Source of the DNA: Ophelia neglecta
Taxonomy: Eukaryota
Reading direction: 5' to 3'
Length of the DNA stretch: 64,000 nt
NCBI GenBank assembly: GCA_965285935.1
Contig: OZ260663.1
Span: forward strand, 23,498,001 to 23,562,000
This document shows, piece by piece, positions 2,558 through 64,000 of this stretch. The position numbers were made by a program, and so were the translations under genes. The notes beneath the pieces are model-generated. The model made no database searches, was not told the origin of the DNA, and saw nothing but the letters and a program-made list of their open reading frames with translations. Each line of letters begins with the position of its first letter. The first letter of the stretch is position 1.

Positions 2558-4222
2558 ATGAATCTCACAGAGAGCCCTCTGTCGGAGATGGGAGCTTACA
2601 AGGCGGCCCTCCTGCTACCCAAGGTGGTATTACCGATTCTTATTGTTGTGGGGGTGGTTGGAAACCTCCTGACTCTTGTGACCCTGCACTCTCGGGCGTA
2701 CGGCCGCTCCCCTTCCACCGTCGGCCTAACATTTCTGGCGGTGGCCGACACCGGATACCTCATATCAACCCTCAGATGGTAAGATTGACAATAGAACCAG
2801 TAGGAATTCATTGTACTAATTACGGTAAATTGCGCAAAAAAAGGATAATGCAAATCACCAATATTTTTATGAAATGTCAGCTGTATCTTTTAGTTTTGGG
2901 AAATTGCAAGAAATATCTAGTAATAAAAGATTGAATTTAGATATATTATACCAGAACCTTTTAATACATGTATGTTTGCAGTGTAATATCCATAATGAAT
3001 ATGAATTTTAGTTCCAAAAGTGACCAATAGGGGCCGTGAGAGTCATGTGATTTTTTTGAAAGCCCAAACACTAGAGTATACCCTAATTAGCTACAGTAGG
3101 TCAATAACATACACACGTTGCTGTACATAATAGGTAGTCGTAAGTGTCCACCCCTCGTCTATATTCAGATAATCGGATCGGGGCCCAATAATTGCCCTAA
3201 ATATTCTCTTTCGGCATATATTTAATAAAATGGACAAACATTGTAAACCTGCTAAACACCTGCCAAAAGGAAAAAGCTCAAGCCCATCACCTACATGTGA
3301 TGTTAGTTTCCAATGTTCTTACACGCAAGGACCTTAATGGACCTTTATTTCCAAAGCCATTGCAACCTGCCTAATTACTTTTGCGTTTAACATTTCCTTA
3401 TTCCCTTTAATACTCAGGTGGGCAAATGCAGTGTTCCATGCCGATTTCCGGTTGATCTCGTCTGCAGCTTGCAGTTTTCACCAGATGTGGACTTATTACT
3501 TCCGACACCTATCATCCTGGACATTGGCGTTCGTCACGGTAGAGAGAGCTGTATGTGTCTGCTTCCCTATTCGGTGGAAAACTACATTCACCACCAGAAG
3601 GAATGCTGCCATCTTGGGATGCATGGCACTTGTTTTGTTTGGAATCAATTTGCAAATTCCTTTCAAATTCGGATTTAATTGGGATTCGGATAGCAACATA
3701 ACATACTGTAATGTCTACATTAGCCAGGATTACTGGTTTAACAAAGTATGGGTGCCTTTGGACGAAGTTCTTCATTTCTTTCTTCCAGCGACTATCATTC
3801 TTACCGGAAACATAGTTATCATTTGGCGCCTGCGTTCTGAACCTCTCAACGCCAATGTAAATGAAGAGCGCAATAAATCTATTACAGTAATGCTGGTCGC
3901 CGTCTCTATCGTGTTCCTGTTGACCATTCTGCCAAATGCCATTTTCCGATTGGGCGATGCTGAAAGGGCTTGGTCAGAGGACACCAATCAGGAGATCGCT
4001 GAAGTCACTTTGGCGTACTACGTCACCACAATGTGGGCAAGGGTCAACAACGCCATTAACTTCTTGTTGTATTGCGCTACCGGTTCAAAATTCAGATTCG
4101 CCTTTTTTCAAACCTTCCGAGTGTTTAGACAAAGAATCAAGGTGGGACATTCATCGGGATCTAGCCATGATATCCCTAGTAAGCTGTCCATTTCTCAGGG
4201 CACAGTTGATACCCATGTGTGA
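2558..4222 (+). CDS. Class A (rhodopsin-like) GPCR, FMRFamide-receptor/GPR139-142-like invertebrate expansion type; 2 exons, 341 aa
   Basis: Exons 2558-2778 (ends TG|gtaag) and 3418-4222 (after tactcag|); phase-2 join is in frame. Motifs: N-terminal NLT sequon, TM1 GVVGN, TM2 LAVAD, TM3 SSWTLAFVTVERAVCVCFP, TM5 FFLP, TM6 FLLTILP, TM7/H8 NNAINFLLYCATGSKFR. Confidence 0.93.
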
Positions 4223-43754: not shown

Positions 43755-46700
43755 TTACCGACTTTTCCAAATAATATTTTTGCATACATCGCAATTCCAA
43801 ATATGTTTGCCTACTTCTTTAAATACTTTGGCAGCCCATGTCAAAATCACTATAACCTCATCTGCCTCAATGTCTTCACCGGGACAGCCAAGCATAGTTA
43901 GGGCAAGGTCCCTATTCGAGCAAGTCTCTATATAATTGACAAAATACGGTGACACATTGTCGGTTACTGTCCAAAACACTTCTCGATGAGTTGCATAGTG
44001 AGAGCACTCAGTAAGTCTGTGAACTATAAGGTCTCGAAAATTGTCCCCACATAAGTGACACGATCCAAGAAGACTAAAAGGTACCACGTACAGTTTTGCG
44101 TAGTCCCTAACAGCAGCCCTACTACTCAGGCAGAATCGGTGAGTTTGCCAGAGAAGTTGCGGACTGGACATTTCATTTATGACCAAATTATAATGGAGTT
44201 GGTCCACACTACTTAAACTCGAGTCCGTTACGAAAGAATTCTCTGATATCCTAACATTCTCAGCAACCATAACTTTCCACTGAGAGTTTGACGGGAATGA
44301 GGCGTGCTCAATAAACGACTGAAGAGTGTCCATAAGACCATACTTGCTTAGTAGGTTAAGCAAGTCGTTCACAAAGCCTTTTGTAGTATGGTTATTAGCC
44401 TGAGTAACGGCAGAGCACAGTCTGAGTAGAAAGAGTTTCTTTATACTTGAGTCCGGTAATCGGCAAATTCTTCCAAAGAATCGGAGCTTACGCATTGCAA
44501 ATTCACTAAAGAGAGACCACCATCCAATCATTGCAAGAGTCATTTGGGAGTTGGATTGTGGGTGGAAACCCTGAATATATCTAGCGCAAGCCCTATGACA
44601 TCTCTCCAACTCCTGTAACTGGCTGCTGGTAAGGTCATTCCAGAGTTCACAACCATAGAAAGCACTTGGCACTACAGTGCTTTTGTAGAGTTTGGTGAGA
44701 GTTATTGGGCCAGCTCCCAGCCTAGAGAGGGCTGCAATCTGCCCCCTGGCTCTCTTACAGGCATCTGACGTTCGGCTTCCGGAGCTAAACCTATCGTTAA
44801 GCCGTATACCAACATGTGTCTCTTCGTCAACTACAGGTAGCTGTGTCCCGTCGAGAAGCCAATGCACTTGATTTTGTTTTAATTTTGTCCGACGTTTCCC
44901 GAAAATCATTATTTTACTTTTCCCGGGGTTGAATCTAAACCGCCATTGTTTCGCATAGTTCGAACAAATATTAATCATGTTTTGTAAGTCATTAGGATAC
45001 AGAGAGAGCAACACAATATCATCTGCCTGAGTGGGGCATCCGGTGAATATGTCCATTACTCGCGCTCCCAACCCAGAGTCCTGCAACTGCCATAGCATTT
45101 CATCGTAAAATATCATAAAGAACCACGGGCCAAGAACAGCTCCTTGTCTCACAGATTGATTGACAGCTATGCTTTGCGACAGTTCACCATCTACGAGTAT
45201 TTTATTAGTCATATCAGTATATGAGTTTACAAGTAGTTTCCATGTTTTTCCACGTATGCCGAGTTTATTAAGCTTCACAAAGAGGCCAGCATGCCACACC
45301 ACATCGAATGCAGTAGCAGAGTCAAGAAAGCAGGCATACACGGGGCTTCCTCTCTCTACATGGAATCTAATAGTGTCCTGGAGTACATAGGAGGTCATCA
45401 AACTACACATTCCTCGCTGATAGCCAAACTGAAGTGGGTGTGGAAAGGGCCTAAGCCGCCGACAGTCACCGAGCCAACGTTGCAGGCGGAGTAAGATGAC
45501 TCGCTCAAACACTTTAAATATTACTGGCAGTAGAGTTATTCCGCGGTGATTCAGTCGGTCATCTGCGTGTTTACGTGAACCTTTGTAAATCGTAATAACG
45601 ATGCCTTGTTTCATGGGCTTTGGTACATAGCTCCTGGTGTACATGTCATTAAATAAAGCTACTAGATACTTGTATAAAGTACCTCCTCCATATTTGAGAT
45701 GTTCGTGTGTAATTCCATCGTGCCCGGAAGCCTTGCGCAATTTGAGATTGCGAATAACATTGCTCACCTCACACTCTGATACAGGATCTTCCATTACTTC
45801 GTCCAGTTCATGTCCTGTATTTTGTTTGAGTCTTAAGAATTCTTCTTCTATATACGTCTTATGGTCTTGCTTAAATCTTTGATCAGTCAGTGGAGTATAT
45901 AAGCGAGAAAAGTGTTCTGTCCAGGCAAGCCGTTTCTCGTCCGCTGCCCTTAGAATTTTATCATTTATTCTGAGATCCAAAGCACGCGTGGATCCTTTAT
46001 TTCGAGTTCTTTTTAACAAATAGAACAGTTTCTTTTGGTCGGCCTCCGCTGCATGCTCGATTTCTGTGTGTATGCTATCCTTCAGCGCGGCTTCGTGTCT
46101 CCGGATTGTAGCTCTGTAAATTCGCTTGATATCCTTGTATTCTCTATAAGATCTGAATTCATTGCCACGCGGTTTGCCTTCGTCTTTCCACAGGTTGACC
46201 TTTTCACGAAGCTCGGTGTGTATTTCGGGTAGACCGCTGTCTTTCCAGTAGGGCTTGACATGTGGTTTGTACCTAGACACTGGTATATTTATTTTAGCAC
46301 ATTTGTCCATTGTATCGATGATTATTTGGTAACTGTTAGTTAAGTCTTCGTCACTCTGATGTTTTCCCAAATTAAATCCATCAAGTTTCTTTGCTAGTTT
46401 TGTATTCAGACTGCGTGTGTAACCGTCTGCTATTTCCTGATTTGACAGTTTCCCCCAATTAAGAAATGTTCTTGTCGTGGGGGTTTTGACAGTTTGTACT
46501 GGTCCCAAGTTCAAGCATGCCATGACTGGCGTGTGATCACTTACGTTCAGCACATCTCTCTCAAGGACACAACTGGTCAACACAAGGTCATACATGTTCA
46601 GCGGAAGCAAGATGTGATCAATGAGGCTATGTAAGTTCTCGCCCTGCTTGAAGCTGAATAATGGGCCGGTACAATAATTCACCACAGAGAGAGAGAGGAA

Positions 46701-47357
46701 GTCATTTCTGTCCATAAACAGCTTCAATAATTTTGTCCGTTTGTTAACATTAATCTGTTGAAGCCTAGGTCCTTCTACACCAGCGTTCATGTCCCCCATG
46801 ATAATCACCCTACTATAGACAGAGTATTCATGATAAAGTGAGTCAAGCATGTCTATACACTCGTTAAACGATGCATCCGAGTTGTTCGACGAAGGTAGGT
46901 ACACAGCAAAGAGAGTGATATACTGTTTTTTCCCATATTCAATTTCGATTCCAACGATTCTGTCACAGTTTGTTGGCAGTGTTTTAATCTTATTTGTCCA
47001 TTTTCTATTCCAAATAAGTGCCACCCCACCTTTTCCCCTCCTATAAGAGTTCAATGAATCGAGTGAGGAATCTGTTACGCCGTAACAAGCATAGTCTTTA
47101 TGCATACAGCCCAGCAAATGAAGGCTGTTTGGAAATAGCCAATGTTCGGTGAGGGCCAAGACATCGAGGTCATATGAGGCCAAAAGCTCCTGTATGTATC
47201 CAGCATTCCTCATGCTTCCCTGGCAGTTGAATTCGGCGATTTTTATTTTCATTTCTTTCATACTGCTAGTAAATGTTCTTTTAATCCCTCCAATGGCGGG
47301 CATACACCCCTTTCGGCCAAAAGTCTTTCGAAAGTATCGCGTCCGTGAATACTTCAT
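43755..47357 (-). CDS. LINE ORF2: AP endonuclease + reverse transcriptase + C-terminal CCHC-like finger (likely start at Met 47261)
   Basis: APE motifs EFNCQG, LTEHWL, GKGGVA, AVYLP, GDMNA, IDHIL, SDHTPV. RT motifs KASGHDGI, RGITLLP, QFGY, FLDSATAFDVV, VRQGAVLGP, PTQADD, FNPGKSK. C-terminal CHLC-x9-H-x4-C. 1200 uninterrupted codons. Confidence 0.95.
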   Translation of the reverse strand: MKYSRTRYFRKTFGRKGCMPAIGGIKRTFTSSMKEMKIKIAEFNCQGSMRNAGYIQELLASYDLDVLALTEHWLFPNSLHLLGCMHKDYACYGVTDSSLDSLNSYRRGKGGVALIWNRKWTNKIKTLPTNCDRIVGIEIEYGKKQYITLFAVYLPSSNNSDASFNECIDMLDSLYHEYSVYSRVIIMGDMNAGVEGPRLQQINVNKRTKLLKLFMDRNDFLSLSVVNYCTGPLFSFKQGENLHSLIDHILLPLNMYDLVLTSCVLERDVLNVSDHTPVMACLNLGPVQTVKTPTTRTFLNWGKLSNQEIADGYTRSLNTKLAKKLDGFNLGKHQSDEDLTNSYQIIIDTMDKCAKINIPVSRYKPHVKPYWKDSGLPEIHTELREKVNLWKDEGKPRGNEFRSYREYKDIKRIYRATIRRHEAALKDSIHTEIEHAAEADQKKLFYLLKRTRNKGSTRALDLRINDKILRAADEKRLAWTEHFSRLYTPLTDQRFKQDHKTYIEEEFLRLKQNTGHELDEVMEDPVSECEVSNVIRNLKLRKASGHDGITHEHLKYGGGTLYKYLVALFNDMYTRSYVPKPMKQGIVITIYKGSRKHADDRLNHRGITLLPVIFKVFERVILLRLQRWLGDCRRLRPFPHPLQFGYQRGMCSLMTSYVLQDTIRFHVERGSPVYACFLDSATAFDVVWHAGLFVKLNKLGIRGKTWKLLVNSYTDMTNKILVDGELSQSIAVNQSVRQGAVLGPWFFMIFYDEMLWQLQDSGLGARVMDIFTGCPTQADDIVLLSLYPNDLQNMINICSNYAKQWRFRFNPGKSKIMIFGKRRTKLKQNQVHWLLDGTQLPVVDEETHVGIRLNDRFSSGSRTSDACKRARGQIAALSRLGAGPITLTKLYKSTVVPSAFYGCELWNDLTSSQLQELERCHRACARYIQGFHPQSNSQMTLAMIGWWSLFSEFAMRKLRFFGRICRLPDSSIKKLFLLRLCSAVTQANNHTTKGFVNDLLNLLSKYGLMDTLQSFIEHASFPSNSQWKVMVAENVRISENSFVTDSSLSSVDQLHYNLVINEMSSPQLLWQTHRFCLSSRAAVRDYAKLYVVPFSLLGSCHLCGDNFRDLIVHRLTECSHYATHREVFWTVTDNVSPYFVNYIETCSNRDLALTMLGCPGEDIEADEVIVILTWAAKVFKEVGKHIWNCDVCKNIIWKSR

Positions 47358-48060
47358 TGATTGTCAATATTGCAGCAAAGCCGTCCGTTGTTTTACTTTT
47401 CATGACACTTACTTCAATGGCATCAAAGTAGTAGTTTTCTCTTAGGAAACCATGGATCATTTCAGCCGTCGTTTCTTCCCTTATATTTCCAAGGTAAAAC
47501 TTAGCAATACCTTCTGGCAATGTATCTTTAACAGTTCTTTTTGTGTCACGTCGGTAGTATGTTTGTGTATCGTGTGTATTCACGTTGTGCCTTTTCCTTG
47601 CTTGGTTCATGGGCTGGTCTGGCTCCGTCCTTCTTATTCTGACGGGTATTTGCGAATACATATTTTCTCCGTTTAGCCCATAGTCCGCTGGTCGAACAGT
47701 CATATCTGCTACCTGCTGCGGTTGCATTTCTCGATGTACACCACTCGTGAGAGTATTTAACTTGGAGGAATACAGGGGCTTGGTACGGGGCAGGGAAGGT
47801 GAATATGGCAATCTCGGGAAAGCTGCATGTCTTTCCAATTTTTCAATGTCATCGAGCATGCTATACATCATTTTTCCATTAGCTTCCCAGAGCTTTCCTT
47901 CTTCATCTTTCGATCTTTCTAAATTGTTTATTCTATCGCGTAACTGTTTCTGGTTCTCCTTGACCTTTTGTGCTGCTATGTCATGATTCGCCCTAATTTG
48001 CTGAATATTTGCCTTGATGTCATTGTTACTGTCAAGACTCTGCGAAACAGTGGAACGTTT
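47281..48060 (-). CDS. LINE ORF1, C-terminal part (coiled coil + RRM-like region + FWPKGVYARHW tail); N-terminus missing
   Basis: Frame stays open upstream of the Met at 47871 with coiled-coil-like IKANIQQIRANHDIAAQKVKENQKQLRDRINNLE. RNP2-like KFYLGNI and a terminal FWPxGVxxRxW motif typical of LINE ORF1 ends. Confidence 0.75.
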   Translation of the reverse strand, partial: KRSTVSQSLDSNNDIKANIQQIRANHDIAAQKVKENQKQLRDRINNLERSKDEEGKLWEANGKMMYSMLDDIEKLERHAAFPRLPYSPSLPRTKPLYSSKLNTLTSGVHREMQPQQVADMTVRPADYGLNGENMYSQIPVRIRRTEPDQPMNQARKRHNVNTHDTQTYYRRDTKRTVKDTLPEGIAKFYLGNIREETTAEMIHGFLRENYYFDAIEVSVMKSKTTDGFAAILTINEVFTDAILSKDFWPKGVYARHWRD

Positions 48061-52582: not shown

Positions 52583-53408
52583 CGGCGACTATCAAGGCGC
52601 TGTTACAAACAAATAGATCCAGTTAAACTTACCAAATAAGGTTTAATGTATAACTTTCATTGACTGTCTGCAATCAGCTCCTATCCATGACATTTGGCGA
52701 ATAAAATGAGTTATTTTACCTTACTGCTTACCAAGTACAGAGAAAGAAGTTATGGCTTTCGAAATGTCGGACAAATGATCTTTATCTTAACAAAAAAAGA
52801 GAATATTTGTTGGAAATTAGATCTACATTGAATCCTTGTCGAGAGCGCTTAGAAAGAACGTAAGAACCAATTTGTCTTTACAAAACAAATTCAATGACCA
52901 TTATTAATTATAATTATAATAATTCAAATTCAGAGCATGCAGCACGATGTTGTGGGTGGATGGTGCCAGACTTGATGGTTCTCCTTTAACACGCTCGGAC
53001 AAATCTTATTTGATTATTTAGACACACCACTTTAAGGGTTAATCCTCTGCTTTTTAGGGGTGTTTTGCAATCTGCTCAACATTTCTAATAGAAAGACCAA
53101 TTGGACAAGTCATACTTTTTGGACATTGTTTGTCATACGAGCGCTAAATCCAAATAATTTCTTATTGTTGAGCCATCAATGACTATAATTAAAAGTAACA
53201 GAGTATAGGATAACCAATATGCTACGGACCAATACCTTTCCCAAAACTAATTTTAGGTGCTTTCGTCACATTCTATTTATATAGACAAAAGTAGGGCATG
53301 GGGAGTAATTACTATCATCCCGATATGGTACTCATGTATCACCTATAATTAGCTATAGAACCGAATGACAGAATGAGATTCTAGTCGCGCTACAGCTCGT
53401 CTTGCCTG

Positions 53409-56400
53409 TCAGCTGGTGGTAGTGGTGGTAGTGGTGGTGGTGGTTGTAGTAGTGGTTTGCCTCTTCGACCTCCCTGGAAAAAGAAAAGAAGTCTCTAGGT
53501 GTGCTTTTGTTTAGGATACTTTTGATTATCTTATTATTTACACAATTGATGCATTTGACGCATAGCAATGACATAATTGATAAAGGGGTAAAAGGCTATA
53601 AGTCGCTTTTATTTTTATTGGTAATTGTATTTGATAATATTCATTCCTAAACCGTAAGTCAACTGTTTTCAATGCATTTACTATATTGTTTTAACCTAAA
53701 CATTCCAATATAATAAAGTTACTGGAAAATGAACTTGAAATGCATAAATGATTAATATTGAATAATTTAACATATAAAAACATTTTATCACTGGTTATAA
53801 GGTCATATGAAACTGCATATATTTGCAATTAATCGCTTGACTGTATAGCTAGGTGTGTTTTTAGCTTCATTTTTACAATAGCGATGGATTCTGAAGGCTT
53901 GACACCAGACGGGATGTCCTTCCACGGGAATCGGCCAGATAATTAACAAGAAGTAGGAACGCAATAAAAATAATTGGGCTGATAACGGATCTCTGCGATA
54001 CTACACACAGAAGCACTACTTGGATTATACCAACAACAAAACATTTAATCCTATGAACCCCCCCCCCCCCCCCCCCCCCATATGCAGAACCTGAAAGAGC
54101 ATATTTCAACATCTGATACCCTAGCCCTGGTTGTTGTTCACCATGGTCAATATTATCGGAAGTAGCGCTGATGCTTCGGATTGACCAATAAGCAGCGGAA
54201 CTCCACTTATTAATTATAGAACGGGAAAATTGAAGAGGATAGAAAAGCATCGTGGGGCAAGAGGGCCTATAGCGCATTTGAATGAGCAACTTTTGATGTG
54301 AGCACCATCTAGCGAGAAAGGAAATACTGTGCTACATGCTGGAATACTTTGGAAGGCAAGAAATTCAGGCTGTCATTTTCTCCTGCAGCCACACTCTTTG
54401 ATTACTGTCTTTCTCCGTTAAATAACCGATGAAAATAAGGCATGCAAACTTTGTCCCGGGAAGGGACAGTTTCAAGTTAAATTGTGCCCGAAAAAAACTT
54501 AATACTTAGCCCGGAATACAACGTGTGGATATTATGAAGGTCGACTTAAATGTCATGTTTGTTTCTCCTTAGCCGCACTTGAAACAATGCATCAACTCTG
54601 TGTCCTGTGTCCATCATTACACTATTACAGGTACATGTACTGTAGAAATCAAAGCCGATCGTCTTGCTCGAACAACATGAAGTTACAACACTAAGGAAGT
54701 TGACGCAACTCTTGCTTTGACATAACTTAGTTGTTCTTACGTCAAGGAGTTTATTTTATGAAAGTTCACACCCCAAAATGTATTTGTATAGATGCTACAT
54801 CATAACGTCAGCGATCAAGTATTTAAAAAAGAAAAAGAATATTTAATTATATTTCTCCAGGCGGATGGAGTTTTTTTCTCGGAATATTAGTAATGGTGAT
54901 CTGTGTAAGCTACAACTGATTGCGGCACTGCACTGTATATTTGAAATTTCATTTATAATGAACTGTACGCATTGTTTCGAAAAATGCTTTTAAACAAACA
55001 ACCATGGGTATCTAATGGGGTAAACATGAAAATCAAATAAGGAAGTAATGCTTATACATTTGGGATGAACTTTCGACCCATGTACAGTGATACTCCTAGC
55101 TATCAATAGGGCAATAGGCCTACGTCATCAGATACGGCAGGAATATACTAGGACTGATCGGCGATATGAATACGTTACCCTGATTAGAAGGCTTGCGTGA
55201 AACTTGCGCGGCGGAAAACAGGTACGATATACCTACCGCATAATTATAGCACGGCTTTAATAAGGAAGTTGCCTTTAGTTTTGAATATTATTAAATACGG
55301 TTCATAGGGGAATATCAATTGACCTTGATGATAACATACCTTTCATCCGAACGTAACTAGAGAATCCCCAATAGGCGGGAACATCTTTACACAAATCTAA
55401 TGCTTCATCACTAAGAAAGTAAGTGCGGGATATTGGAACTTTTCCAACGTCTATGGTCAAAACTATACTTTCGTCGTTCCTTGTCGAGTTGACTGCTGTT
55501 GTCTGTAATGAATATCCAAAACAGTAATATGATCACGTATATTGACCGGTGTCTGGATGTTTCGAGCGGGCGCCAGTTCGAGCGGTGGCTATATTGGTCG
55601 TTTCGCCAGTACGAGCGGTGGCTATACTGGTCGTTTTCGAGCGGGGCCATCACACGTTTCGAGCGGGGCCATTTCTAGTTGGCTATGATATTAAACAGTT
55701 CCAGTTATATGGGATACACTGTACACACGACTTTTCGATCGCGACGTCGGCTGATCGTATATATACATGGCGGACATGACTGCTAGGCAAGAGACGACCT
55801 GAATATTAAGTGAATAGCAAAAAAATAATACAGTAATATAGCTACATTATCAAGATTTTAGACTAACACCTATAAAACGCCCGCTCGAAAAGCCCCCGCT
55901 CGAAAAGTCCCCCGCTCGAAATCGTACCCCCGCTCGAACTGGCGCCCGCTCGAAACGACCCGGGACCTATTGACCTGGTAAGACACTACAGTGTTTCCGT
56001 AAAATGAGATTAAAGTAGTAACCCTGGAAATAGCAAGTAATTATTACAATTAACAAGGAAAACTTAAGATAACTGTGTCGAAATTAGCGTTTGCACCTGC
56101 AGCTGATAATGGACCTTCTGTTGACGATGATGTTGCATATGATATGATACGAGACGGGTTTTAAAAGAAAGTGTTTTATTCACTTGATCTGCAAAATGCT
56201 GAAGATTATCCAAACTGTATACTACGACTGAGTGTTATATCATTTAAATGGATGCTTTATTTTAACGTTTTCCCGTATAAGTTGGAAGGTTACTGGCATG
56301 TTTATGTAGGAATTCTAATATTGATTTACCCAAGCAACAAATTCTTCACCAGACTCAAAGATCCTGTCAAATTCCTTCGGGGAAGCAACACAAGCATCCA

Positions 56401-57782
56401 CGCCTGCAGGTTTCACGACCCGGATGTTCTGGAAATGAAATTGCAAGTGAACGCTTTCACATCATACATTACGAACAGATTTCCATCAACTTTCGTTTTT
56501 ATACTATCGCCACTTGATCGTTAGTATCACTTAACAATTGAATCAATTGCAATTTTAATAGATATTACACCGAATTCATATCAACCGCGAGTATATGAAA
56601 ACAAAAGGTAAAATAATTGTAAACCAAGTTAAAAATTAATAAGTATAACAGGTTTCTCACTCGCGCGTGATCGTCAATTACGTAGGCAACACCGGCTTCA
56701 CGTTCCATCTTGTAGACAGCGACAAACGTGTTGGGGTTTGCCTGTATAAACTCTCTGACTGAATGGCCTTGGTAGTCGACAAAATCGTATTCTAGCTGTT
56801 CAAACAAAAGATGCATTCAAGCAGTTCTTTCCAAAAAACAAACATGCATGTTACTTGAACATCAGCCGACAGCGGCTGATCGCAAGCCATGCTGCCGAAA
56901 GTGGAATATAAACCTAGAAGAGATTGCAGTGACATGCAGATCTGAAATTGAAGGTAAGGTAAGGAATGTTGATGCCATCTTCTACAACACATGCTAATAC
57001 AATTGTGCCACGTGTTAGGTAATAACCCAATAAGAAGCCAACAGTTTGGAGTGTCATCCTTTCCCGCCAATCAGGGCTCAGGATTTTGGCAAAGATTTTA
57101 CGCAGGTACGTAGTATTATCAACAGGGACCATAACACTATAAGATTTAAAATATGGTAAGACGGAGCAAATTTGGCTTTCAATAACAGGAAAAATAGAAA
57201 TCCATAATGTGTTCAAATTCATGAAAAGTATTAATAACCTACTTCTCTTTTATAATAATTAGCACATGTTAACATCGTCGATCAGCGTAACAAAGATTTG
57301 CGCTGATCCATTCAGAATGAGGTGAACCAGTAACGAGAAACAGGTCAGAGACTAAATTGTCAACCTTCTTAGCACTTACTGCTGGCAGTTTCTATCTTAA
57401 AACAGTGATCGGGATAGCAAAAGTTCTTCATATCGGGCAGGCACACCTTATGGACACACAATAAGCGTGCCCCCCCCCCCTCTCTCCCCCGTCGTCCCTT
57501 TCACTGATTCAACCGCAATGATTAGGTCAAAGTATCGTTTATAGTAACTAGGGACACTAAATTGTGCTGTAAATTGACTCCATAGTTTAATCAAATTCCC
57601 ATTGACTGTTTCTATACCATCAGTTGCGCTTATTGTACATTTTTATTTAAGAATTCACAATCTTGGCCTACCTGTCTCAGAGCGGCAGAATTATCGACCA
57701 TGCCACTGTCCTGTTCCGCATTCGTCGACAAGGCCAGGAGAAACGCCATGACCAAACATGACACTTGCCCTAACACAGACAT
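53409..57782 (-). CDS. Secreted BRICHOS-domain precursor A (190 aa): signal peptide - BRICHOS - RSKR - Q(T)14S
   Basis: Exons 57782-57672, 56795-56661, 56428-56330, 55502-55340, 53473-53409; all GT-AG, phases 0,0,0,1. Protein MSVLGQVSCLVMAFLLALSTNAEQDSGMVDNSAALRQ/LEYDFVDYQGHSVREFIQANPNTFVAVYKMEREAGVAYVIDDHAR/NIRVVKPAGVDACVASPKEFDRIFESGEEFVAW/TTAVNSTRNDESIVLTIDVGKVPISRTYFLSDEALDLCKDVPAYWGFSSYVRMKG/RSKRQTTTTTTTTTTTTTTS. BRICHOS hallmarks: conserved Asp (VIDDH), first Cys (DACV) and LCxxxPxYW. Confidence 0.85.
55548..55967. mobile_element. 420-bp foldback-type MITE with 8-bp TSD in intron 3 of BRICHOS gene A
   Basis: About 38-bp TIRs (core GTTTCGAGCGGGCGCCAGTTCGAGCGG) and subterminal TTCGAGCGG repeats. 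TATTGACC is duplicated at 55540-55547 and 55968-55975. Paralogue B has a single ATTGACC empty site near 62001. Confidence 0.9.
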
Positions 57783-57975
57783 CTGAAACAAATGGAACGT
57801 TATTATTTAATGTAATGCACTGAAAAATTTTGACGCACTATGAACATAACGAAATATAGTTGAATATAACATTTTTCATTGTAAAATTGCAGTATTAGGT
57901 AGGCATTATAAAGTATAACATAGACAAAAAAGAATGCTATGAAGTCCCAGCGTGCGACCTAATAAGGCTACTCAC

Positions 57976-58148
57976 CTGATACAGGAGAGAGAATATTACT
58001 TAATACATGTATAAGAAAACCTACCTTCAAAGATAAAGTAAGGATATAGAAAAGAGCCACTCAGCACCAGAACCCAGACGACGTTATGACAATGACTTGC
58101 CACGTTCTGTCGATGTCTGGCTACATTTAGGTTACATACTATTTTATA
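57976..58148 (-). promoter_or_regulatory. Putative TATA box and non-coding first exon of BRICHOS gene A
   Basis: TATAAAA at 58148-58142; strong donor CAG|gtgagt at 57976; the ATG exon is immediately preceded by acceptor tttgtttcag in both paralogues. Confidence 0.5.
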
Positions 58149-59401
58149 CTAAGAGGTAAACAACTGGTACACCTCGCGGTTCTCAGTGGAAATTAAACTT
58201 AGACTTTGGTTTTGTGTTATCTGGAAATCCTCATTAAACCACCATCGAGGCATTCTCTAAGAAATGAAAATGCGTCAGTGGCAAAGCTTCCAAAATACTG
58301 AAGTTGTTTGAAAAATAAACACACGGAGGCAATCAATGCGGGAAGTTACACTAATACAAAATAAAAATACTAACCGAGAGCCATGGGTTTCTAACGTGAA
58401 TATACTTATTAATGTAATGTACAACATGACAACACACCGATAGAGAGGTTGAGTATACTGTTTTTTTAAAGCCTTTGGTTAGTATGTATGATAGTTTGTT
58501 CCAGGCGACGCCCAACTCTGATATAATCAAATTGACCATTCAACAGCAGAATTTGCAGCAATTTGGCTTATGTGTTTTTATCGTATGTCCTGTTTCACGT
58601 TTGGCAAAAGTAGACAGCAATAGGCTGCAGTAAACCGTTAGGTTACTTTGCATATTCTGCATAAATTGCAAATAATCATGCACATGTGTTATTAACACTT
58701 ATGTGTGCCCGCTATGTACTAAGGACAAAAAGTGAGCATATCTACTAACAAGCTGCCTCTGAGTGCAAAGATTAAACTGCGGAGTTATTATGCTCGTGAT
58801 AAATCCCCCTTAAATCTCACTCAGACTAACGTAAGTAATGGAAGACACTTCACAGCACATGCTGCTGTCTTTACCACTGGTTGGCATGGCTTTTGGACAA
58901 AATGCTTATATCGGGCATGTGACTTCATCCTCTATTTTCATTTGACCTGACAACTCATCAAGATGCCTTTATATTTTGTGATTGATATCAAAAAAGCCTA
59001 TTGCGCACATAAGATATATTTTGAACTTTTGCCTTTCAAACTTTTACGGTTTGCCAGTACTTTCCCTGTTGTTTCGGCCTAGTTTTTTAATATAGCAAAC
59101 TTTGTAAACTTCATGAAATATTTGTCAGCGACTACCTTAGCTTCTGAAAGTGCTTTGCACTGTTTTTAATGGTAAATGAGATTTTTAATCAGTTAATGTT
59201 CTGTTACTTTCTCGATTAAATAGAACAGAATGTCCTAGAGCGAGAAATGTTTCATTTTTCTAACTTGAAGATTTTACCTTTTGCATGTTACTTATCGGCC
59301 CGACATCCTTTACTTTATTTGTACGTTAGATATGGGAGCTAATGTGATTCCTATTATATTTTGTAAAACAAAACAAAAACCAGTTCGTTTGGTTTAATCT
59401 C

Positions 59402-59407
59402 TTTATT
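59402..59407 (-). terminator. Polyadenylation signal of BRICHOS gene B
   Basis: AATAAA in the block conserved with 52577-52582, followed by TTTTG repeats. Confidence 0.65.
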
Positions 59408-60030
59408 CGGCGACTGTCATAGCACTGTACAAACAACTTGATCCAGTTAAACTTACCAAATAAGGTTTAATGTATAACTTTCATTGACTGTTTGCAATCA
59501 GCTCCTCTCCGTGACAATTGGCGAATACAGTGAATTAGTATACCTAACCTATTAGGAACAGATGACGTAGATATTGCTTTTCGTTTATCAGATAAACGGT
59601 CTTAACAGAGAGAACGTTAATCTTCTTATTTTGAAATGTGTTCCTTGTCTAGTGAGTCCTTAAAAAACCAAATAGCGAACAGTAATTAAAGGAGAGTTGT
59701 GTCTTTAAAAGAATCACGTAATATAAACAGTATTAATTATATCAATAATGTGTCGATTCGCTAGTTTTGTGTGTTAGTATTGATGGTTCTCCAACTCTGA
59801 CAAAACTTATTGTCATATTCAAACATACATCGATAAACGTAAAAGGTCTGTTGAGGATAGAAAACCGGGAGGCTACGGATAAAATTTAAGTTGGTTCTTT
59901 TAATTAGGAAATGTTTAGGCTTGGATTATAATTTTTATCTAATCGATAATGTTGTAAATATATCAACCAATAATAAGCTATAAAAGAACGACAGAATGAT
60001 GTTCTAATCGTTCTTGGCTTACTCCGGTTG

Positions 60031-63000
60031 TCAGCTGCCGACATTGATGAAGGCGGAAGTGGTTTTGCTGGTTTGCCTCTTGGACCTCCCTAAAAGAAGA
60101 ACATTATTCTGTAAGTGTGTCCTCGTTCAGCACATTTAAATTAACTTGTTATTTATGTAATATATTTAGTGATTAATTAGATGCATCGAGTAATGACTGA
60201 TTCAATAAAGGTTATTAAGATAAAATGCTGTCAGACGTACTATTTTTATAAGTAATTTCTATTTCACCCTGTTCACTTCAACACTGTAAGTCGATTAATT
60301 TCCTTCAATTCACTATATAATTGTACATTCTAATATAAAAAAGTTATAGGCATGAACTTGAAAATTAGATTAACATTGAATAACATAAATTCAAAAACAG
60401 CGAATCTTCACTGATTATATGGTCACATGAATATGCATGTATTTGCCATTAAAATATATAGATGAAATAGGCGAGTTTCCAGCTTTATTTCTACAACAGC
60501 AATGGAATCTGTAGGCTTGACACCAATGGGAGGTCTTCCACGCTAAACGGCCAGATAACGTTTAGAAGTAGGTAGAAACAATTGGAATTGGGCTTAGAAC
60601 GGATACCTGCGATACTACGAACAAAGGTTTACCGGAATGAATATGTTATCACAATTCCAATCCTATGAAAAAGCTCGTAGAAGGATGACCTGAATGCACA
60701 TACAGGCTGACATCTGACACCCCCGCTTTGGTTATGATTCTATCTAGTTCTACACCATGGTAATTATTATACAAGGCAACGCTGATGCTACGGATTGTTA
60801 AAACAACAGGAGAGCATACCCGGCAATTAAATACAAAATCGGGAATCAAGCATTTTTCATTATTCACCGGGAACCTGCAGTCGAAGTCACACTAACATCT
60901 ACCCCTAGCTTCCTAACAGTACAATTTGGTGACAAACTCGCGATACTAAAATCTTAAAACTCAGCCGTCTACTGCTGAGGTGTTCACAATTGATCGGGAT
61001 CATAGATCGCTTTTGCCATATGTATATTTCACCACAACCAATTGAGGGAGATTTATTTCTGAAAACCCCATGCGCAAACAAATCGATTAGTAATTATGAG
61101 GTTCTCGGTCTTAATAGCTACACAATCAACGAGTATCCTGTTTGACTGGAGGAAAAAAATGTCGGAAAAATAATCTTACAGCACCATCTTTGATTAATAA
61201 TCCCATACAAATATCTACCGTTAGTAAGGCAACCACACTGATTAATAAAATCACCTGTTATTATTTATCAGGTACTCAAATATTCTCTCAGCATCCAACC
61301 CACTGATATCTCGGATCATTTTCTTGCATATTGCAAGTTCGAAGACGGATATTTAGTTTATGTACCTAAGTGTTATATAACTCTTCTGACATTGTTTTAT
61401 GATTGAATTAACTAACTGGGAATCTATGATAACTCCAAATAAATTCGACACTGCATAATAAGTTGTTCGATATTTCATCTACGTGAACGTCTTGTTTCGA
61501 CAGATGCTTTTCTTTGCAGAGAGGGCAATAAACTACTCAAACAGAAGAAACCATCTGTTCTAACAAGCTATGACGTAATGCTTATATATTTTGATGACAT
61601 ATGTAAAGCGTCTAGCTATCAACAAGACACGGCGACAGGCAAATAATATTTCTTACAAAAAATTGTAAGAATTTAGATAATTATCCTGGTTACCGGGTAG
61701 AAATCAGTTGCATAATATCTAGCATGGCGCAGCTTTGATAGAATTTGACTCTGCTACACTGTTCGCACGAGCATATCGATACAGTTTAATGACAACTAAC
61801 CATTTGTCCGACCGTAGCTAGACTCCCAATAGACAGGAACACCTCTACACACATCTAATGCCTCATCACTAAGAAAGTCTGTACGGTATATTGGGAGTTT
61901 ACCCACGTCTATAGTCAAAACTATCCTTTCTTCGGTCCTTGTCGAGTTTTCTCCTGTTGCCTGTAATAAAATTGTATTAAACAATCTCATGGTCAGGTTA
62001 ATTGACCTCACAAGAAAAAGCAGTGTTTCTGAAGAATAAAATACAATTGTAACCCTGTAAATGTTAAATTTGTTACAATTTTAGCTACAAAAACGACCAA
62101 AATAGCCGTGATGTACAATAGCGTTTCGATTTGCCGCAGAGGTGGAAATCAATTTTGTTCGCTAAACGATGTATTTGAAGATAACATAATAGAGGCCGTT
62201 ATGGATTATGAGAGAAAACTTTATATAGGGAGCCATATATTCCCTTGCCCTACGGACTGCTGAAGAATAGCCAAAATCGATAAGTCAGAGCGCCACGTTG
62301 TTTGAATAACTGCTATTTTTAAAGTTCTTTTTCGTATCAGTAACAGTTTAAAGGTTCCTGTCATGTGTACATTCTGATATTAACTTACCCAAGCAACAAA
62401 TTCTTCACCAGAGTGAAACCTCTTGCCACACTCCTTTGGAGAAGCAACACAGGCATCGACGTCCGCAGGTTTCACAACCCGAATGTTCTGAAAATAAAAT
62501 TGTACGTACAAATTATTCACACCATTCTTTATATTGTGAGATGATTTAAGTGTGACTGCGGTTCGTCCACTCTAGTTTTTTTAAACATGTTCCCTTTACT
62601 TTTTTATAAGGCAAAATTAGCAAATATTGTTTGCAAATGCAACAGCAATTACACCGAATTCTTAATAGTCCCAGGTACATAAAATAAAGTAATATAGTGG
62701 TAACACAAGTTATCAATTAATAATTATAGCTGGTTTCTAACTCGATCGTGATCATCGATGACGTAATCGATTCCGTCTTCATTTTCCACCTTGTAGACAA
62801 CGACAAACGTGTTGGGGTTTGCTTGAATAACTTCTCTGACTGAATGCCCTTGGTAGTCGACAAAATCGTATTCGAGCTGTTTAAATGAAAGATCCATTTA
62901 TTAAAGCAGTTTTTGAAATGAAAACAAACTGTATGCCGAGTGTCCTGAGAGTAAAGAGTAATATAAGTCGGTACAATATTTTATGCAATATTCATATAAG

Positions 63001-63860
63001 ATAGCTGCGAATATTGGCGAGCATTAGATGTGGGGCCATATGTTTTTTGAGACAATGAGATAATTCAAGATCTCAAGAGGCAGACTTCTTATTTCTCAAA
63101 TTTCGGAGCTAGGTTATTTTTCTTCCACAGTGCTGGAAGTTCATTTTTAGATCTATGATTTCAGTACGTTTTTTCTGATGATTTTGATTGTTACTTGTTT
63201 AAATTAGCTGCTAGTTTTATTTGTCTGTTCTTATAGTTAATATTATGCTTGTAGGCCCTGATATAATAGGAAGAATAAAGATGATAATAATAATAATAAT
63301 CACAATAATGGTTATGACATGTGAAAATCTTCAATTATCTTAACAGCCATTGGTAATCATCAATTCAAAATGAGGAGAACCAGTGAAACAGGTCTGTGAC
63401 TGAAATGCCAACTTTCTTAGCGCGCGTAAAACAAACGGCAGCAGGAAAGCAGGAAAGCAGGAAAGCAGAAGGGAATCTGTCCTGCAGCAGGAAAGCGGCA
63501 GGAAAGCAGCAGGAAAACAGTAGGAAAGCAAAAAGTTGTTCTTATCGCCGAGGGAGAAATTTTGTTGGAGTGCGAATGAAACGTCGCCCCTTCCACCATG
63601 TACGTCTAGTCCTGCTTCATTCATTCCCAGTCATAAAGCCATAAAGGGACACTATTGTTTTAATTAACTTTAAAAAATCCCCAATGACTGTTTATATATA
63701 TACCATCGGATGTGTTTGCTTTACACTGTTATTTTAGAATTTAGAAGGTTTGCCTGCCTGTTTTTTCTTTGTCAACCATACCACTAACCTGTTCCCCCTT
63801 GGTCGAAGAGGCCAAGAGAAACGCCATGACCAATAAGGACACTTGCTCTAACACCGACAT
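60031..63860 (-). CDS. Secreted BRICHOS-domain precursor B (174 aa): signal peptide - BRICHOS - RSKR - QTSKTTSAFINVGS
   Basis: Exons 63860-63789, 62876-62742, 62487-62389, 61960-61801, 60089-60031; GT-AG, same phases as A. Protein MSVLEQVSLLVMAFLLASSTKGEQ/LEYDFVDYQGHSVREVIQANPNTFVVVYKVENEDGIDYVIDDHDR/NIRVVKPADVDACVASPKECGKRFHSGEEFVAW/ATGENSTRTEERIVLTIDVGKLPIYRTDFLSDEALDVCRGVPVYWESSYGRTNG/RSKRQTSKTTSAFINVGS. Confidence 0.85.
63438..63530. repeat. GCAGGAAA 8-bp tandem repeat in intron 1 of gene B
   Basis: About 7 exact or near-exact GCAGGAAA units; not seen in gene A. Confidence 0.8.
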
Positions 63861-64000
63861 CTGAAACAAATGGAACTGTATTTATTATAGTATGTTGAAC
63901 AATTAAGCAGCATTAAGAACATAACAAAACTAAATTTGAGCCTAGCCGTTTATTTTTTATTGTTGACTTGCATTATCAAATAGGCGCTAAAATAACGTAA

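Follow-up and report, generated by a model that had tools for sequence, protein, structure and literature searches.

Gene models of the tandem pair

The window, the whole 64,000-nucleotide stretch of Ophelia neglecta DNA analysed here, carries two paralogous genes in tandem on its minus strand, gene A (53409-57782) and gene B (60031-63860), with five-exon reading frames of 190 and 174 residues, respectively. The exons and their main features are as follows.

Gene A, exon 1 (ATG, 37 codons), 57672-57782, minus strand: signal-peptide-like start, residues 1-22, at 57717-57782
Gene A, exon 2 (45 codons), 56661-56795, minus strand: N-terminal part of the BRICHOS-like domain, ending in VIDDHAR with the conserved Asp
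Gene A, exon 3 (33 codons), 56330-56428, minus strand: first invariant Cys, 16 residues past the Asp
Gene A, exon 4 (54 codons and one base), 55340-55502, minus strand: NST sequon, second invariant Cys, VPAYW, phase-1 donor at its end
Gene A, last exon, 53409-53473, minus strand: Gly codon completed; RSKR at 53460-53471; predicted peptide Q-T14-S at 53412-53459; TGA at 53409-53411
Gene B, exon 1 (ATG, 24 codons), 63789-63860, minus strand: signal-peptide-like start, CAG/GTTAGT donor
Gene B, exon 2, 62742-62876, minus strand: N-terminal part of the BRICHOS-like domain, VIDDH
Gene B, exon 3, 62389-62487, minus strand: first invariant Cys
Gene B, exon 4, 61801-61960, minus strand: NST sequon, second invariant Cys, VPVYW, phase-1 donor
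Gene B, last exon, 60031-60089, minus strand: RSKR at 60076-60087; predicted 14-residue peptide QTSKTTSAFINVGS at 60034-60075; TGA at 60031-60033

The clean splicing proposed in an earlier sequence-only reading of this DNA was borne out: all eight introns are GT-AG with phases 0, 0, 0 and 1, neither frame contains an internal stop, and the same layout recurs at about 25 loci. One point is corrected: exon 1 of gene B stops earlier than that of gene A, at the donor listed above. Read from the ATG, both frames start in a 13-16-residue hydrophobic stretch, behind which lies a small-residue cut site; in gene A the mean hydropathy over 12 residues is 2.8 and T-N-A precedes the predicted cut. Immediately 5' of the gene A ATG lies an AG acceptor, suggestive of a non-coding exon further upstream. 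The motifs VIDDH, DACV and LC/VC..VP.YW and the NST sequon were found in both genes, and the pro-region is acidic, with a net charge of -9 and -12 in the two precursors.

Across exons 2-4, dN/dS between the paralogues is 0.27 (dS 0.47); purifying selection acts on the domain of both genes. The sequencing runs found for the organism are three sets of DNA contigs, all of a single sample; aligned to 53300-57900, they revealed a second haplotype and confirmed the assembly there. In that haplotype exon 4 of gene A carries three synonymous and four conservative changes, none of them disruptive. A 138-codon open reading frame in intron 4 (53873-54289) was rejected as a gene, as it is featureless and runs through a poly-C tract.

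A gene family with variable last exons

The roughly 25 loci of the O. neglecta genome that repeat the exon layout of genes A and B include a large cluster on the chromosome that bears the pair. There are no close copies past base 64000 and only two, A and B themselves, genome-wide. A phase-1 donor 8-10 codons past the YW is kept in all family members (about 20 paralogues). Candidate polybasic last exons were found on the sense strand at 8 of 17 loci and on the antisense strand at none, a density of 0.42 per kb, compared with 0.047 per kb in control DNA.

Within the family, it is the cargo exon that evolves fast. Among the cargo exons analysed, which cover about half of the family, the sequence behind the conserved pro-domain is highly variable, and the predicted tails range from a Val/Ile run, in a paralogue on contig C12, to Trp-rich and cationic helices. 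Thr/Ser/Asn-rich stretches past a second basic site occur in at least three further paralogues.

Predicted C-terminal peptides

The peptide predicted for gene A, Q-T14-S, has 16 residues and no basic residue; that of gene B, a Thr/Ser-rich 14-mer, has one. Both lack Cys, a hydrophobic face and an amidation signal. The antimicrobial peptides of annelid BRICHOS-related precursors are recognised by positive charge and amphipathicity, with disulfide-stabilised or helical structure, and the predicted peptides of A and B do not have this character. Since they have at most one basic residue and neither Cys nor a hydrophobic face, we file the two genes under the precursor family and not as antimicrobial peptides.

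The peptide-coding parts of A and B share 68% nucleotide identity, a value equal to that of the introns. Behind the Thr run of gene A lies a degenerate 9-nt repeat that resembles a microsatellite, and slippage could therefore account for T14 as readily as selection. The DNA contigs of the sample break at this Thr repeat (53410-53459), and the length of T14 is given as it stands in the assembly.

These observations leave room for an account that is possible, though not probable, in which the functional product is the BRICHOS domain itself, with a vestigial tail, the cargo exon having decayed after duplication to low-complexity Thr/Ser sequence, by slippage in gene A. The product would then be a secreted chaperone, or a protein whose glycosylated tail stays attached, instead of a bioactive peptide. 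Selection on exons 2-4 beside a peptide part conserved no better than introns is consistent with such decay, as are the degenerate repeat behind T14 and the lack of charge, Cys and an amidation signal; it is also known that recombinant BRICHOS domains act on the clients of other proteins (PMC10182729). Against it, the furin-type site and the Gln-Thr that follows are retained in both genes with only a synonymous change, and both tails keep an open frame that ends in an identical stop. The Thr/Ser/Asn-rich stretches that three or more other paralogues have in their cargo, together with the published peptide HfBRI-54 discussed below, further indicate that this composition is tolerated or used, which counts against a vestigial tail.

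The RSKR exon as the probable last exon

The RSKR exon is the sole last-exon candidate common to A and B and has the best polypyrimidine tract and acceptor. The sequence-only reading had rested its frame on a synonymous TCG/TCC difference within RSKR, a shared AGC TGA stop and phase-1 compatibility, and all three are present in the sequences of both genes. The RSKR-QT block is identical at 20 of 21 nucleotides. Since five conserved islands, this block among them, are found between the last introns and flanks of A and B, its conservation alone is no proof of coding.

It is quite unlikely, in our judgement, that the 3' ends are incomplete or wrong, with the last exon elsewhere (for example in a conserved block of the last intron, or by read-through of exon 4), or that the genes are silent. 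The block in question (53860-54013 in A and 60480-60627 in B) is conserved with a shared AG, and read-through of the gene B donor reaches a stop after two codons, both of which would fit such an arrangement. However, the intronic block lacks a basic site, its acceptor is weaker, and it was rejected as an alternative last exon because its indels of 1, 1 and 2 nt break the frame, such that A and B would read different frames. The phase-1 donor kept across about 20 paralogues, the nine-fold enrichment of polybasic last exons 3' of exon 4, and the fact that the RSKR exon is the one candidate that both genes have all argue for the gene models given above.

Relationship of the domain to BRICHOS

The BRICHOS fold consists of a beta-sheet with two helices at its sides. 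BRICHOS proteins pass through the secretory pathway and consist of a transmembrane or signal segment, a linker, the BRICHOS domain and, at the C-terminal end, a region with high beta-strand propensity (PMC10182729). The domain is marked by three strictly conserved residues, an Asp and two disulfide-bonded Cys (PMC9627735); in human Bri2 these residues are D148, C164 and C223 (PMC9627735, PMC9278091). Genes A and B have a signal-like start, a linker and a conserved N-glycosylation sequon; the tail of B includes AFINV, and the Thr residues of the tails are beta-branched. The Asp and both Cys are invariant in the 14-20 family copies compared. In A and B they are spaced 16 (Asp-Cys) and 58 (Cys-Cys) residues apart, the corresponding spacings in human Bri2 being 16 and 59.

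For the Pfam comparison, A and B were scanned exon by exon. Exon 4 matched the BRICHOS model PF04089 at 13.5 bits in A (model positions 62-91) and 13.1 bits in B (positions 65-91), below the gathering cut-off of 25 bits. Exons 2 and 3 were without a match in this single-exon Pfam scan, as were exons lying upstream at other BRICHOS loci in theirs, and the window is absent from the listed matches of a PF04089 scan of the whole genome (762 Mb). Across the family, PF04089 is matched by 11 of 14 exon-4 copies (best E 0.0019) and is the only Pfam family to recur. Conversely, a profile of the family exon 4 run over the 762-Mb genome returned 23 family exons and five others, and those five coincide exactly with PF04089 matches; one of them, C2:42103952, reaches 25.5 bits. 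With the profile of exon 2, a collinear upstream exon was found at seven Pfam-BRICHOS loci with 8-14 bits, whereas none of 1500 decoy open reading frames scored above 6 bits.

Other searches returned less. Profiles of exons 2, 3 and 4 gave only chance matches among PDB sequences, none of them a BRICHOS entry, and phmmer with exon 4 found no true homologue among 1.84 billion protein representatives. Its sole matches, P0001 and P0002, were rejected as spurious, being repeat proteins with summed scores and without a BRICHOS domain. ESM Atlas look-alikes of exon 4 (best score 0.79) were bacterial lipocalin-like clusters and uninformative.

The assignment to BRICHOS is accordingly supported at the level of exons, through the reciprocal profile searches and the Asp/Cys/Cys spacing, and not at the level of the whole protein, the single exons lying near 13 bits against a cut-off of 25. 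An unrelated, lineage-specific secreted domain whose C-terminal C..P.YW resembles BRICHOS by chance is very improbable: no exon of the two genes reaches the Pfam cut-off, exons 2 and 3 lack a Pfam match and the PDB sequence profile searches return no BRICHOS entry, but the family profile and PF04089 reciprocally pick the same exons from 762 Mb, exon 2 has its collinear counterpart at seven Pfam-BRICHOS loci, and the invariant Asp, Cys and Cys stand at a Bri2-like spacing.

Comparison with known BRICHOS precursors

Genes A and B are probably intact tandem duplicates within a lineage-expanded family of about 25 genes for secreted BRICHOS pro-proteins, of the annelid BRICHOS-related-peptide kind. 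Annelid precursors of this kind consist of a signal peptide and a BRICHOS pro-region, and a Lys/Arg-Arg site separates the latter from a C-terminal peptide 18-91 residues long (PMC10745061). In the alvinellacin gene, a member of a multigene family, the peptide occupies its own last exon (PMC5431198), and nicomicin precursors have an acidic pro-region (PMC6265681). We liken A and B to the published precursors (preproarenicin, preproalvinellacin, capitellacin, nicomicin and HfBRI) by architecture. They likewise combine a signal peptide, an acidic BRICHOS pro-region, a furin-type site and a C-terminal peptide, the last in an exon of its own within a multigene family whose cargo varies past a conserved pro-domain. 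The kinship with polychaete BRICHOS precursors that had been suggested for this DNA is supported by the architecture, the separate last exon and the family-wide layout of polybasic sites.

The differences lie in the cargo. With 16 and 14 residues after RSKR, the peptides of A and B are slightly shorter than those published. The published cargo was chosen for positive charge and tested as antimicrobials, whereas that of A and B is uncharged (0 or +1), non-amphipathic and nearly pure Thr/Ser. Cys-free BRICHOS-related peptides, and a Thr-rich random-coil region in HfBRI-54, have already been described from Heteromastus filiformis (PMC10745061), so that the new element is confined to cargo that is uncharged and purely Thr/Ser-rich. 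The novelty of the A and B cargo is smaller than the sequence-only reading had implied.

In human ITM2B/Bri2, of the ITM2 (Bri2/Bri3) family, a short C-terminal peptide lies beyond the BRICHOS domain, as predicted for A and B, and the Asp-Cys and Cys-Cys spacings are near-equal. In Bri2 this peptide, Bri23, is released by furin. Bri23 is the native, beta-prone client of the Bri2 BRICHOS domain (PMC10182729) and contains two Cys and hydrophobic residues, whereas the A and B peptides are described without either. As a type II membrane protein, Bri2 moreover has its N-terminus in the cytosol, in contrast to the cleavable-looking signal peptide with which A and B start; the frames as modelled from the ATG do not have the type II topology of the ITM2 family, and an upstream coding exon is possible. 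In proSP-C (SFTPC), BRICHOS guards a beta-branched run of poly-Val, to which the 14 beta-branched Thr of the gene A tail and the Val/Ile tail of the C12 paralogue may be compared. The client in proSP-C is N-terminal, membrane-spanning and aliphatic (PMC10182729), whereas the tail of A and B is C-terminal and polar.

Proposed mechanism and implications

The sequence features outline a possible route of maturation. The N-terminal signal peptide would carry the A or B protein into the endoplasmic reticulum, where the BRICHOS domain would fold around its conserved Asp and one disulfide (Cys95-Cys153 in A, Cys82-Cys140 in B) and may be N-glycosylated at the conserved NST. A furin-like convertase would then cut after R-S-K-R, releasing a C-terminal peptide of 16 residues from A or 14 from B. 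More speculatively, the new N-terminal Gln would probably cyclise, and the Thr and Ser residues are candidates for O-glycosylation. Compared with a cationic antimicrobial, the cargo of the pair would have changed to a short, uncharged, Cys-free, Thr/Ser-rich peptide, in gene A partly by expansion of the 9-nt repeat.

A wider reading, tentative and rather doubtful, is that the annelid BRICHOS pro-domain serves as a general export platform among whose recurring clients are uncharged, Cys-free, Thr/Ser/Asn-rich peptides, with a free poly-threonine 16-mer as the extreme; such peptides might act as heavily O-glycosylated mini-mucins or self-assemble into polar beta-sheets. By analogy, and as an equally doubtful part of the same proposal, Thr-rich clients might need the chaperone for the same reason as the poly-Val of SP-C.

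Published mining of worm BRICHOS precursors retained only positively charged tails, which were tested as antibiotics. Should A and B be expressed and cleaved, neutral, Thr-rich cargo is carried by this pro-domain too, and it becomes testable whether BRICHOS recognises any beta-branched run or hydrophobic runs alone, and whether the platform supplies mucus, tube or signalling peptides besides those of defence. If the tails are merely decayed low-complexity sequence, the pair are ordinary divergent members of a known family. The census of about 25 genes provides a ready list of peptides for testing.

Structure and selective constraint of genes A and B

Genes A and B lie head to tail on the minus strand of the window, and their splicing and expression are predicted from sequence logic alone.

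Predicted exons of genes A and B
57672-57782, minus strand, gene A exon 1
56661-56795, minus strand, gene A exon 2
56330-56428, minus strand, gene A exon 3
55340-55502, minus strand, gene A exon 4
53409-53473, minus strand, gene A last exon
63789-63860, minus strand, gene B exon 1
62742-62876, minus strand, gene B exon 2
62389-62487, minus strand, gene B exon 3
61801-61960, minus strand, gene B exon 4
60031-60089, minus strand, gene B last exon

All introns are GT-AG with phases 0, 0, 0 and 1, leaving open frames of 190 codons (A) and 174 codons (B). The motifs quoted in the sequence-only reading, together with its synonymous TCG/TCC difference and common AGC TGA stop, were confirmed in both genes. 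One correction concerns exon 1 of B, which ends at an earlier donor, CAG|GTTAGT, and 13 residues of A's linker are consequently missing from B. In both genes an AG acceptor immediately 5' of the ATG makes a non-coding upstream exon likely. The N-terminus is a hydrophobic stretch (12-residue mean hydropathy 2.5-2.8) followed by T-N-A or T-K-G and looks like a signal peptide, and the pro-region is acidic, with net charges of -9 (A) and -12 (B). R-S-K-R directly follows a Gly codon divided by the last intron, and precedes Q-T14-S in A and QTSKTTSAFINVGS in B, with the stop next. The RSKR exon is the sole last-exon candidate common to A and B, and its acceptor is the best among the candidates (15/15 pyrimidines in A, 12/15 in B).

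Between A and B, exons 2-4 give a dS of 0.47 and a dN of 0.13 (ratio 0.27), and identity is 80-84% in exons against 68-72% in alignable intron and flank. The assembly at the locus agrees with DNA contigs from one sample, and a second haplotype is present, whose exon 4 carries three synonymous and four conservative changes with the frame intact and the invariant positions untouched.

Identity of the domain

Tested exon by exon, each exon being a separate query, the domain is very probably BRICHOS, and the exon-level evidence is coherent. The Pfam BRICHOS model PF04089 (gathering cut-off 25 bits) matched exon 4 at 13.5 bits (A) and 13.1 bits (B), with E about 0.1 and at model positions 62-91, and no other Pfam family matched these two exons. 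Across the family, 11 of 14 exon-4 copies matched PF04089 (best E 0.0019), and no other Pfam family was matched by more than one of the 14. An exon-4 profile built from the family, run over the 762-Mb genome, recovered 23 family exons and exactly five other places, all of them among the 13 genome matches of PF04089 and one above the Pfam cut-off; such coincidence of two independent models at the same ~100-base places in 762 Mb excludes chance. The exon-2 profile found a same-strand upstream exon, ending V-V-(D/E)-D-(Y/F), in seven of the Pfam-BRICHOS loci at 8-14 bits, against 6 bits for the best of 1500 decoy frames, which argues that the N-terminal part, too, is shared, along with its exon boundary.

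Strict conservation in BRICHOS is limited to three residues, an Asp and a pair of Cys that form a disulfide (PMC9627735). All three are invariant in the family, and their spacing (Asp-Cys 16, Cys-Cys 58 residues) compares with 16 and 59 in human Bri2 (D148, C164, C223; PMC9627735, PMC9278091). No public homologue was found in collections evidently without this organism's proteins, so that this result carries little weight.

The genome also holds a second, more canonical BRICHOS group in tandem arrays at C2:42.10, C2:46.27-46.32 and C8:79.45-79.47 Mb (loci L002-L006, L008, L009, L011); its exons reach or approach the Pfam cut-off, and its loci have a V-V-(D/E)-D-(Y/F)-ending exon in common.

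The gene family and its variable last exons

In whole-genome searches run exon by exon, A and B had no close copies except each other, and about 23 more distant loci carry the same three core exons.

Family loci other than A and B (C5 is contig OZ260663.1, on which the window occupies 23,498,001-23,562,000)
C5:86.57-86.71 Mb (L016-L033, L039-L062), both strands, cluster of ~18 loci, partly mirror-image duplicates
C5:79.90, 85.76, 86.35 and 87.16 Mb, single loci
C2:83.88 and 83.93 Mb, two loci
C12 (L029/L041, G000:C12:49443654-49447527), one locus

The cluster's minus-strand copies (86.574-86.628 Mb) are near-identical to its plus-strand copies (86.635-86.712 Mb), indicating a large inverted duplication, and three copies with an in-frame stop in exon 3 (86609181, 86616088, 86635791) are likely pseudogenes.

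Exon 4 ends 8-10 codons past P-x-Y-W at a phase-1 GT donor in every member with sequence at hand, in the same position as in A and B, and a further exon is therefore the family rule. Four features were required of a candidate last exon in the DNA available 3' of exon 4: an AG acceptor behind a pyrimidine tract, a reading frame in phase 1, a polybasic motif, and an encoded peptide 10-45 residues long. The sense strand of the 17 loci yielded 8 candidates and the antisense strand none; the candidate rate was 0.42 per kb, compared with 0.047 per kb in control sequence totalling 86 kb.

The predicted tails vary widely among members. In the C12 paralogue, a last exon predicted ~1.4 kb 3' of exon 4 encodes KRRPKR and then a 14-residue, mostly Val/Ile/Leu run, which resembles that of surfactant protein C, although here the tail is placed C-terminal to BRICHOS. 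The tail predicted at C5:85.76 is cationic, Trp-containing and helix-like; others are a Trp-rich 20-mer and a short peptide with a single Cys, and three members of the cluster have a Gly-Phe/Trp segment, short and basic, that leads through a run of 3-4 Arg to an uncharged Thr/Ser/Asn/His-rich stretch. Mirror-duplicate pairs have near-identical core exons but tails with as many as 9 differences in 38 positions, and the cargo is thus the fast-evolving part.

Proposed processing and role of the peptides

Annelid BRICHOS-related peptides have the same layout (signal peptide, acidic BRICHOS pro-region, furin-type site and short C-terminal peptide) and, as in A and B, the peptide occupies its own last exon within a multigene family (PMC10745061, PMC5431198). 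The layout also fits BRICHOS proteins in general, whose C-terminal region serves the domain as its native client (PMC10182729). The family of A and B is of a known kind. A 2023 paper (PMC10745061) described Cys-free BRICHOS-related peptides as well as a Thr-rich coil region, and it was the one relevant paper found by a full-text literature search on Thr-rich BRICHOS proteins. What would be new is a predicted uncharged cargo that is purely Thr/Ser-rich, including a near-pure poly-Thr 16-mer; the genome-level census of cargo divergence within one family is also new.

In the proposed pathway, the precursor would enter the ER, the domain would fold and be N-glycosylated at the conserved sequon, and a convertase would cut after RSKR, setting the C-terminal peptide free. 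Cyclisation of its N-terminal Gln is likely, and Thr/Ser O-glycosylation is possible. The predicted peptides of A and B are neither amphipathic nor Cys-containing and have a charge of 0 or +1, and so are not antimicrobial-like. Thr is beta-branched and unfavourable to helices, and a role of the tails as BRICHOS clients is thus conceivable.

Evidence on whether the tails have a selected function points both ways. Against it, similarity between A and B is no higher in the peptide-coding sequence than in the introns, a degenerate TGGTGGTAG repeat, the signature of slippage, encodes the T14 run, and the RSKR-QT block, conserved at 20/21 nt, is yet one among five conserved islands in the region. 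In its favour, the frame, cleavage site and stop are retained in both tails, and uncharged Thr-rich stretches also occur in other paralogues and in HfBRI-54, a BRICHOS-related peptide of Heteromastus filiformis (PMC10745061).

Other features in and around the genes

The last introns share a minus-strand block of ~150 nt, at 53860-54013 (A) and 60480-60627 (B), with windows of 80-87% identity, which opens with an acceptor-like site, GTAGTATCGCAG, common to both. Read as an alternative last exon, it contains indels of 1, 1 and 2 nt, so that the frames part after ~8 codons, and it lacks a basic site. The block resembles a regulatory element or a relic more than a coding exon common to the two genes.

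Intron 3 of A contains a ~420 bp MITE-like element (55548-55967) with 41-nt terminal inverted repeats of TTCGAGCGG sub-repeats, whose contig depth, hundreds to thousands of times that of the flanks, marks it as a high-copy repeat. It is missing from intron 3 of B, which accounts for the difference in intron size (827 nt in A, 428 nt in B). A 22-base poly-C run lies in intron 4 of A (54058-54079) and a shorter C run in its intron 1 (57466-57476), and DNA-run contigs break or mis-join at C runs. Intron 1 of B carries tandem AGCAGGAA/GCAGCAGGAAA repeats (63440-63530).

Elsewhere in the window, an uninterrupted 1200-codon ORF on the minus strand (43755-47357), with endonuclease/exonuclease/phosphatase and reverse-transcriptase domains, looks like an intact LINE-type retrotransposon, and a 196-codon ORF (47281-47871) lies just upstream of it. 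On the plus strand, a 263-codon open frame (3431-4222) scores E 8e-16 against the 7TM receptor model of the rhodopsin family and probably belongs to a GPCR gene as one large exon.
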